In this document: positions 8,060-10,060 of the stretch, in pieces
Layout: the number at the start of each line of letters is the position of its first letter
Numbering within the stretch: position 1 is the stretch's first letter
Source of the DNA: Auanema rhodensis
Taxonomy: Eukaryota; Animalia; Nematoda
Length of the DNA stretch: 64,000 nt
Assembly: GCA_964057225.1 (NCBI GenBank)
Contig: CAXKVF010000011.1
Coordinates: 15,493 to 79,492 of the forward strand
Reading direction: 5' to 3'
Notes under the pieces: model-generated
Told to the model about the DNA's origin: nothing
The model's input: the letters and a program-made list of their open reading frames with translations, nothing else
The model's database searches: none
Position numbers and translations under genes: made by a program

Positions 8060-10060
8060 ATGTTTACAGAAAAACAGGAAACGATCCGAATTTGGCGGGA
8101 AAAGTTAACGAAGAATGAAAATAACAGTGTTATTCATTATTGCTTTTAATCTCTGTTTTATTAATCAACTTCTTATTATTTATTCAATTTTCTTTTTCAG
8201 TTCTCCGACTAATGAGGCAAAACTTTGATTCTGAACGTCTCGAGCGTTTTCGTAAGCAGCATATTTTGAATAAAAGGATCAAAAACGAAATAAATAAAAC
8301 ATCTTGTGGGTTTGCAAAATTTCACCAAAAAACATTTTTTTTTATGCAGATGTTCGCAAACATCCTGATCCTGCCGTTCAAAAAGAATTATATAATTCTT
8401 TCCCTAAAGGCGTTAGTTTAAATAAGAGATTGGAGGACTCGGAATTGGATGTTTCATCGACCTCGAACGATCAAAAATGCGAGGCAGTAGAATGACAAGC
8501 ATTCAAAACAGTAAGTCAAAATTAAAAAAAAATTAAACATAACGTTTTCAGATTTGTTTGGATTCGGTCTAGCACATGACCCCATCAAGTTTGTTCCACA
8601 AACAAGTGCAGGACGAGGCGACATTTGCCCAATTTGTTGGAAATATGATTCCAACATTAGCAGGCATTTAGTAAGTTTCTTTGTTATTTTTTATTGTTAA
8701 TTATCAAGGAACTTGCGGAGAAAACAAAAGAATTAAAAGAGAAATTCTGGAGCAACCGTTTTTTCCAAAAGTCAGAATTTTTGAATCTGACAAACGGAAG
8801 GAACAATAAAAAACTGAAAAAATTAGTTCATAAAATGGAGAAGTAAGTTCTAGAAAAGTCTTTTTCAACAACTCAAAACATTTAGCGCTGGAATAATGTT
8901 CACGCCTCTTGATGAAACAACCGATTGTATCAATTTGAATCCTAGATTTGATAAGAACGGTATACATGACCCAAATGGTATAGCAGATTACTACAAAGTA
9001 TATGTTAAAGGAGGAAAAACGTTATTCGGACATGTCTCTTCGAAATTCACCTCCTCAACAGGTTTTCATTTCATGCTTGTATTTGAACATTTCTATTTTT
9101 AAGAATCCAATGCTATCAACAAACATAAGTTTGGAGGTCCCCTGAACAATCATAGTTACAAACACTATGACGCTACTATAAAATTGATGGAATAAAATAA
9201 AGGTTCGGAATAACATTACCAAAAGACAAACATTAATATAATTTAGAAAAATGCGCTAAAAGCAGACAAAGATATTGAAGAAGGACAGGAAATTTTTTGG
9301 AAATATGCAGAGAAAAATGACATGAAAGACAATAACATGGCATATTTCTATCTATGTCATTGTCAGATTTGCCGAGGTTTGCAACACATAATACAACATT
9401 CAACTGTTATTTTATTTATTAGGTCGTTGTCATTGCCAGGCATGCAAAGGTTTTCTATACCACGACATGAGTAAACGAGATACTGCTCATAAATTATCTA
9501 ATTTCTTTAAAATATCGAATTATTTTAACGGAATAGAAATGGATTGGAAAAGTGTAACTCAATACATTTTCGAGAACGAAATAAGTTACATTAAATCAGA
9601 ACTAAAGGTAATCATAAATAATATAAAACAACTGATTGAGATATATTTCAGAGTCAGAACGATCTGGTCAACATATTTAATAAATTGAGCACAACTTCAA
9701 ACTACAAGAAGAAACTCAACAAAATTAAAGACCTGATCAATAAGAAAAAAAGGAGAAAGACTCACACAGGCGAACGTATACGACATAGTTAAAGCACTGA
9801 CCAAAGATAGAAATAACCGTGAACAACAAGAAGGTAAAATACATTACATCGAATACATTCATGAATATAATAAATTTCAGTTGATTATGGGAATTTTCGG
9901 CAGCATTCTAAATTCGTCCATCATTATATTCAAGAACCAGGAGGATATCAATTATGCCCTAGTAGATACGGGGAAGCACAGAAGCAATCTCACAGCATAT
10001 TATATAAACTGTGATACAAAAAAAATCAAATTACTTAAAGACAATTATTATAATTCGTGA
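8060..10060 (+). pseudogene. Multi-exon SET-domain (lysine methyltransferase-like) gene with a CxxC...RHL motif and post-SET CxCxxC; several stops or frameshifts (may be two adjacent genes)
   Basis: Manual splicing across ~9 short GT..AG introns (e.g. 8252-8349, 8511-8551, 8671-8708, 8843-8885) gives ...ICPICWKYDSNISRHL...FGGPLNNHSYKH (NHS 9148-9156)...ALKADKDIEEGQEIFWKY (9271-9306)...FYLCHCQICRGRCHCQAC. TAA at 9193. AATAAA at 10085. Confidence 0.7.

Follow-up and report, generated by a model that had tools for sequence, protein, structure and literature searches.

Within the 64,000-nucleotide window of Auanema rhodensis DNA analysed here, one ribosomal 28S gene is interrupted by a long insertion. 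The question raised by this locus is whether the stretch at window positions 8060–10060, inside the insertion, is a gene, whether it is related to the SET-domain methyltransferases, and whether it could still give rise to a protein.

The interrupted 28S gene and the exons inside it

Analysis of the 64-kb window with Rfam reveals eight tandem rDNA units (18S, 5.8S, 28S) on the minus strand with a period of 8,055 bp. When the first 20 kb are aligned with an intact unit, one 28S copy proves to be split by a 9,175-bp insertion at 5177–14351 (Table 1). The 28S end piece at 4742–5176 is 99.8% identical to the intact unit and contains the sarcin-ricin loop at about 5103–5117, the insertion point lying approximately 20 nt upstream of this loop in the sense of the rRNA. 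The same 17-bp sequence stands at both junctions, and on the left its match can be extended to 21 bp with one mismatch. No terminal inverted repeats were found for the insertion; arrays of 16-bp palindromes (GGTATT-N4-AATACC) are present near both of its ends, and its interior includes 84/197-bp tandem repeats (5736–6672) and G+C-rich repeats of 147 bp. The SET-like gene described below is the sole gene-like part of 5177–14351. The other open stretches match no Pfam family and include no long ORF, and neither a recombinase nor a transposase nor a reverse transcriptase was detectable in the insertion (Pfam searches of exons and open stretches, PDB searches of some of them).

Table 1. Positions in the window of the rDNA junctions, predicted exon blocks, motifs and frame breaks
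Feature	Position	Strand	Basis or remark
3' 435 nt of interrupted 28S rRNA	4742–5176	-	Rfam LSU model positions 3007–3399
Left 17-bp direct repeat, GTAAAACTAACCTGTCT	5156–5172		overlap of two rDNA alignments; repeat family D15; direct reading
Right 17-bp direct repeat, GTAAAACTAACCTGTCT	14352–14368		runs on into remaining 28S
Rest of split 28S	14352–17420		alignment to intact unit
Diverged paralogue fragment of N-terminal block (exons 7342–7426, 7471–7598)	7342–7598	+	tblastx; repeat D12
N-terminal block, family unassigned (exons 8060–8126, 8201–8305, 8350–8510)	8060–8510	+	
Break 1, frame change around A5 run 8473–8477	between 8428 and 8492	+	TGA 8493 in upstream frame
Block A (exons 8552–8670, 8709–8842, 8886–9061, 9104–9192)	8552–9192	+	172 open codons once spliced
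Upstream motif resembling a zinc finger, CPICWKYDSNISRHL	8626–8670	+	three-frame translation
FGGPLNNHS	9130–9156	+	three-frame translation
Break 2, TAA 9193–9195 and gap	9193–9246	+	three-frame translation
SET C-terminal-like exon: ALKADKDIEEGQEIFWKY, then YFYLCHCQIC (post-SET-like)	9247–9376	+	
KDIEEGQEIFWKY	9268–9306	+	three-frame translation
CHCQIC	9355–9372	+	three-frame translation
Rest of block B: exon 9423–9607 (second motif, CHCQAC), exon from 9652	9423–9792	+	
CHCQAC	9428–9445	+	three-frame translation
C-terminal open stretch, 106 codons	9740–10060	+	third frame
Break 3, frame change at A7 run	9745–9751	+	

The original prediction of a spliced gene hidden in the rDNA insertion is borne out by two runs of open codons, 172 and 150 in number, which are assembled across GT..AG introns between the two parts of the split 28S. 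The motifs that it quoted are all found by three-frame translation on the plus strand, in their expected places. The four exons of block A are separated by GT..AG introns of 38, 43 and 42 nt, the removal of which preserves the frame; the first exon (8552–8670) carries GFGL, GRGD and CPIC..H and the last (9104–9192) carries FGGPLNNHS. Block B (9247–9376, 9423–9607 and 9652–9789) provides the 150 codons, with introns of 46 and 44 nt that also preserve the frame, until a TAA at 9790 ends its upstream frame. Ahead of these two blocks, the N-terminal block has 105 open codons before the TGA at 8493 and no match in Pfam or PDB. A TTTACAG acceptor is present at 8063–8069, so that the first exon may be an internal one and the gene may have lost 5' sequence as well. 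At the other extremity, splicing is ambiguous at 9834–9880, where removal of a GT..AG segment shifts the frame, and the only Pfam match of the C-terminal stretch 9740–10060 is spurious (Adhesin_E, E=0.026).

The introns are indeed small, as had been proposed, with measured lengths of 38–74 nt rather than the approximately 40–100 bp first given. Nine out of ten are of the GT..AG type, with donors (GTAAGT, GTGGGT or GTAATC) and acceptors (TTTCAG, TTTTAG or TTTAAG) of nematode type, and their G+C content is 22.5% vs. 34.7% for the exons. The longest stop-free chain containing at most three GT..AG introns, as obtained by dynamic programming, is 227 codons long. Chains from 60 dinucleotide-matched simulations measured 133 +/- 26 codons with a maximum of 192, so that the observed chain exceeds all 60 and the gene structure goes beyond what chance would produce. 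We conclude, as far as can be judged from the DNA itself, that the stretch is a spliced gene remnant inside the rDNA insertion; among the listed runs none of RNA holds the stretch 8060–10060, and the splice junctions are predictions. The two CHCQxC segments, which lie 73 nt apart (9355–9382 vs. 9428–9455), agree at 21 of 28 DNA positions (z about 4.4), which suggests a local duplication that created or spanned the 46-nt intron.

The strongest evidence for a real gene comes from outside the stretch, in the form of the diverged fragment at 7342–7598. This fragment matches 8239–8441 in tblastx (E=5e-7 and 4.6e-5) with no similarity at the DNA level, and it is 36% identical to the N-terminal block over 53 aa, sharing with it the motif SYVR.HPD..V..L..FP. 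Its single intron (GTGAGT..TTTCAG) interrupts the same codon and has the same length of 44 nt. Similarity restricted to the protein level, together with a shared intron, is the pattern expected of old paralogues that were once under protein-level constraint. The beginning of the exon is repeated once more, incompletely, at 7225–7298.

The surrounding 1.3 kb (6673–7984) is a mosaic of paralogous-gene fragments (7225–7298, 7342–7598 and 7667–7855). It represents a minority variant, with a depth 5–25 times lower than that of the gene in four runs, and contigs related to it show an identity of only about 90%. What precedes 7985 is, in each of the four runs, mostly a copy of the 84/197-bp repeat (loose end AAGAATCTGATTAAACTACATACAAAATGG), joined straight to this position. 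The common form of the element therefore lacks 6673–7984.

Relation to the SET domain

Comparison with the Pfam SET family (PF00856), for which the curated gathering score is 22.4 bits, was made with single exons and with a construct in which the NHS exon was joined to the C-terminal exon through an X placed at break 2. For the exon 9247–9378 alone, SET is the only Pfam family retrieved (13.3 bits, E=0.11, profile positions 88–104), and for the joined construct the match extends over profile positions 64–104 of 105 and reaches 16.0 bits (E=0.016), still short of the gathering score. A phmmer search of the PDB sequences places SMYD2 in all of the best 11 matches, over residues 225–267 (SET-C/post-SET, E=0.15), in an alignment that pairs KADKDIEEGQEIFWKY...AYFYLCHCQIC with RAVQEIKPGEEVFTSY...SYFFTCECQEC. 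In the Atlas embedding search, the exon 9247–9376 has SET in 75 of its 100 nearest clusters, with a score of 0.90.

Among the individual signatures of the domain, LNNHS, at 9142–9156, corresponds to the NHS(C) motif of the SAM-binding/pseudoknot region and is aligned within the Pfam match, the cysteine that usually follows being replaced by tyrosine. The sequence EEGQEIFWKY at 9277–9306 fits the C-terminal G-E-E-[LIV]-x-x-x-Y motif with its catalytic tyrosine, and AYFYLCHCQIC corresponds to the post-SET cluster Y-F-F-x-C-x-C-x-x-C. When the exons are abutted, 19 residues separate NHS from the EIFWKY motif, the spacing between NHS and the C-terminal motif in SMYD2. On the other side of NHS, where the GxG SAM-binding strand of the N-terminal half would be sought, GFGL (8560–8571) and GRGD (8611–8622) are present, and the exons 8554–8670 and 8887–9063 are without support from Pfam, PDB or Atlas. 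Nor do these three resources return anything for the NHS exon by itself, for the 59-aa exon or for the exon with the putative N-SET/CxxC. SMYD proteins have a MYND zinc finger that splits the SET domain; no zf-MYND match was obtained for CPIC...H (8626–8670), for which the best Pfam family is Cys_rich_CPCC (E=0.095) and PDB offers weak RING-Z matches only. Of the SET-domain identity put forward in the original prediction, the C-terminal half is thereby retained, with SET as the only Pfam family and SMYD2 and Atlas in agreement; the profile comparison that it called for does name SET, at scores that all stay below the curated cut-off, and the upstream zinc finger and the N-terminal half of the domain receive no profile support.

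The alternative that survives best accepts a real spliced remnant and assigns it to a lineage- or element-specific family other than SET, NHS, EIFWKY and CxCxxC being chance likenesses brought out by motif reading. All SET scores are sub-threshold and no better than plainly spurious matches of other exons (E about 0.01–0.16; in Pfam, for instance, 0.0097 for Adhesin_E and 0.01 for USP8_dimer), so that they fall inside the noise range. The signal is moreover limited to one exon, the Pfam, PDB and Atlas results all resting on the same approximately 40 residues, and no homologue links the gene to SET. Chance likeness does not readily explain, on the other hand, why three different methods give the same family for the same exon, nor why addition of the NHS exon brings a longer match, a higher score and the canonical spacing, nor why the match is in frame and in sense within exons that are supported independently. 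We regard this alternative as unlikely, although it keeps an appreciable weight. Because a single specific family is retrieved, in frame, in independently defined exons, and with a score that rises on inclusion of the neighbouring exon, homology of the C-terminal half to SET is in our opinion likely.

Searches for homologues returned no relative. Exact look-up of ten ORF translations in the protein collection found none of them; a word-index search with the 75-aa SET-like construct and the 71-aa N-block gave no candidates, being uninformative for longer relatives, and metagenome contigs yielded nothing for two exons. With exon queries as short as these, blank searches exclude close annotated relatives only. 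A few candidates were rejected. The 59-aa exon, compared by phmmer with 1.84 billion representatives, gave five matches to bacterial PPC, PKD or GA repeat proteins, which sum up weak stretches and are spurious. Of two scans of viral contigs one was blank, and the other indicated two loci where the match falls outside any ORF and is likewise spurious. Neither the SYVR.HPD of the N-block, considered as the tail of a tyrosine recombinase, nor the GERLTQ..DI of the C-terminal stretch, considered as the Arg-I box of such an enzyme, is supported by Pfam or PDB.

Loss of the reading frame

The reading frame of the gene is interrupted at three points. Frame breaks had been announced near 8480, 9200 and 9750 and are found at 8428–8492, 9193–9246 and 9745–9751, and the TAA reported at 9193 is present (9193–9195). 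This stop codon occupies the very position from which block A would carry on in phase to 9247. The sole GT donor nearby, at 9203, yields the wrong frame, and two AATAAA hexamers overlap the stop. The lesions had been ascribed to decay or to assembly error. Logan contigs from four DNA runs (X1, X6, X8 and X9) bearing four organism labels were used to distinguish between the two. Over 7985–10100 the contigs of all four runs show 0–4 substitutions, 9193 possibly among them, and no gaps, at a depth of 124–720x vs. 17–80x over 7000–7700. Since the contigs are free of gaps in four runs, the frame shifts are not assembly errors, and of the two proposed causes decay is the one that holds for them. We therefore consider that this copy, taken at its sequence, is a pseudogene, unable to encode the full protein. 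The same indel-free broken sequence being the high-copy form in four runs, the gene was dead before this version of the element multiplied. The only length variant of the gene is a minor form without 9 nt at 8690–8700, in runs X1 and X6, which falls within the 38-nt intron 8671–8708.

The constancy of the breaks across all four runs could also mean that they are no lesions at all, the locus consisting of several short cistrons with ordinary ends. A 105-codon N gene would then run to the TGA at 8493, overlapping a gene of about 180 codons that starts at ATG 8474 or 8492, both in the frame of block A, and stops at 9193, a stop embedded in the two AATAAA hexamers; further ORFs would follow downstream. 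Block B, however, has no start codon before its SET-C-like motif, the first Met occurring at 9322, and its frame opens exactly at the acceptor 9247. The Pfam alignment crosses the break at 9193 with normal spacing, and two of the breaks are in homopolymer runs, which are typical sites of indels. An arrangement in cistrons is accordingly improbable. Hardly credible at all is a gene kept functional by recoding, in which programmed frameshifting would occur at the A5 run and at the A7 run, and either read-through or a non-canonical splice at 9193. The sequence is high-copy and nearly invariant, with identical lesions in all four sequencing runs, and two breaks are on A-rich, slippery-looking stretches, both of which are compatible with recoding, but it would need three separate events of different kinds in one gene, it has no RNA evidence among the listed runs, and near-identical copies are more simply explained by recent amplification within or together with the rDNA.

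Origin of the gene and comparison with known systems

The reading that we favour, with moderate confidence, is that 8060–10060 represents a decayed multi-exon gene linked to a mobile element specific for rDNA, and that the middle portion of this gene would derive from a divergent SMYD-like SET domain. The gene would belong to such an element or have been captured by it, and of these two possibilities we infer the former, i.e. that it was the element's own and not a captured host gene. Its central part would go back to a very divergent and short lysine-methyltransferase domain of the SMYD-like SET type, and its intact ancestor may have been an active methyltransferase whose substrate was chromatin or some other protein at the rDNA. 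The frame has since been lost, near 8473–8493, through the TAA 9193 and on the A7 stretch 9745–9751, and the version of the element that multiplied was one whose gene was already broken. No methyltransferase can be made by the present copy.

Among known proteins the gene most resembles the SMYD enzymes (e.g. human SMYD2), with which it shares the 19-residue distance between NHS and the C-terminal G-E-E-hydrophobic...Y motif, the post-SET cluster Y-F-x-x-C-x-C-x-x-C and a cysteine-containing insert between the GxG-like motif and the remaining domain. It differs from them in having only CxxC...H in place of a MYND finger, no cysteine after NHS, a doubled post-SET motif and no detectable C-terminal TPR-like domain, as well as in being a pseudogene located in a mobile element. 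SET domains that are physically linked to viral or mobile genomes are known from chlorovirus vSET, a minimal intron-less viral enzyme, and from SETMAR, in which a host SET gene is fused to a domesticated mariner transposase. The gene recalls both in this linkage, whereas it has about 10 nematode-type introns and is found in an rDNA-specific element, with no transposase or recombinase found.

As for the element, insertion elements specific for rDNA include the non-LTR retrotransposons R1, R2 and RT and the piggyBac element Pokey. The present insertion resembles these in being inserted site-specifically in a conserved part of the 28S while most units stay intact, and its 17-bp target repeat recalls the 17-bp duplication of the Anopheles RT elements. 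Unlike them, it contains no reverse transcriptase, endonuclease or transposase ORF and possesses neither a poly(A) tail nor TIRs nor TTAA, and it has the arrays of 16-bp palindromes at its ends. The lack of TIRs, and the fact that each junction carries the same 17 bp of target sequence as a direct repeat, are reminiscent of Crypton-type tyrosine-recombinase elements, for which a short sequence shared by element and target could give a flanking direct repeat by site-specific recombination. In contrast to Cryptons, no Phage_integrase or other recombinase match was obtained for any exon or open stretch of 5177–14351, and as a Crypton-like element this copy would have to be non-autonomous. In the literature we found no paper in which a SET domain is connected with tyrosine-recombinase elements or with elements specific for rDNA, and none that brings Cryptons together with SET or with the 28S.

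More tentatively, the remnant might stem from an integral module of undescribed nematode rDNA-specific elements, in which a SET methyltransferase, travelling with or fused to a tyrosine recombinase, would mark or read the rDNA chromatin at the insertion site. We lean against this extension of the favoured reading while holding it to be a real possibility. If true, it would mean a mobile element that carries its own chromatin writer; to our knowledge, mobile elements equipped with a lysine methyltransferase for histones or other proteins are very rare. An rDNA element of this kind would offer a direct route to the question of how rDNA units with insertions come to be silenced or tolerated. The effect on the silencing of inserted units that had been suggested for this locus is without support for the present copy, because it cannot encode the full protein. 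The dead copy itself gives no answer on silencing; its value is that of a pointer, through its exon coordinates and motifs, to any intact members of the family in the same genome.

Several smaller features of sequence were observed in and around the insertion. On the 3' side of the gene, a G+C-rich motif, GCGGGGGTGCGGGGGCGGCTAGCCCCCG, occurs four times in units of approximately 147 nt (10161–10233, 10390–10462, 12517–12548 and 12555–12627). Inside the insertion and just before a palindrome (GGTATTAATTAATACC, 13208), 17 of the 21 nucleotides of 13175–13195 agree with the 28S target repeat; this stretch may be left over from a nested copy or from a junction of earlier date. In the last exon of the gene, 10005–10032 agrees with the left junction (5164–5191) at 24 of 28 positions, a match that covers part of the target together with the first bases of the element (A8, then TGAAATT vs. 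TCAAATT) and that could be due to chance or mean that the junction has been copied internally. Two 23-nt arms with 96% complementarity form an inverted repeat, one at 6725–6747 in the minority segment and the other at 9218–9240 in the non-coding gap 9193–9246 of the gene. Finally, the 5' end of the 18S (2444–2534) is found in several direct and inverted copies, with 85–100% identity, in every intergenic spacer (e.g. 3350–4494).
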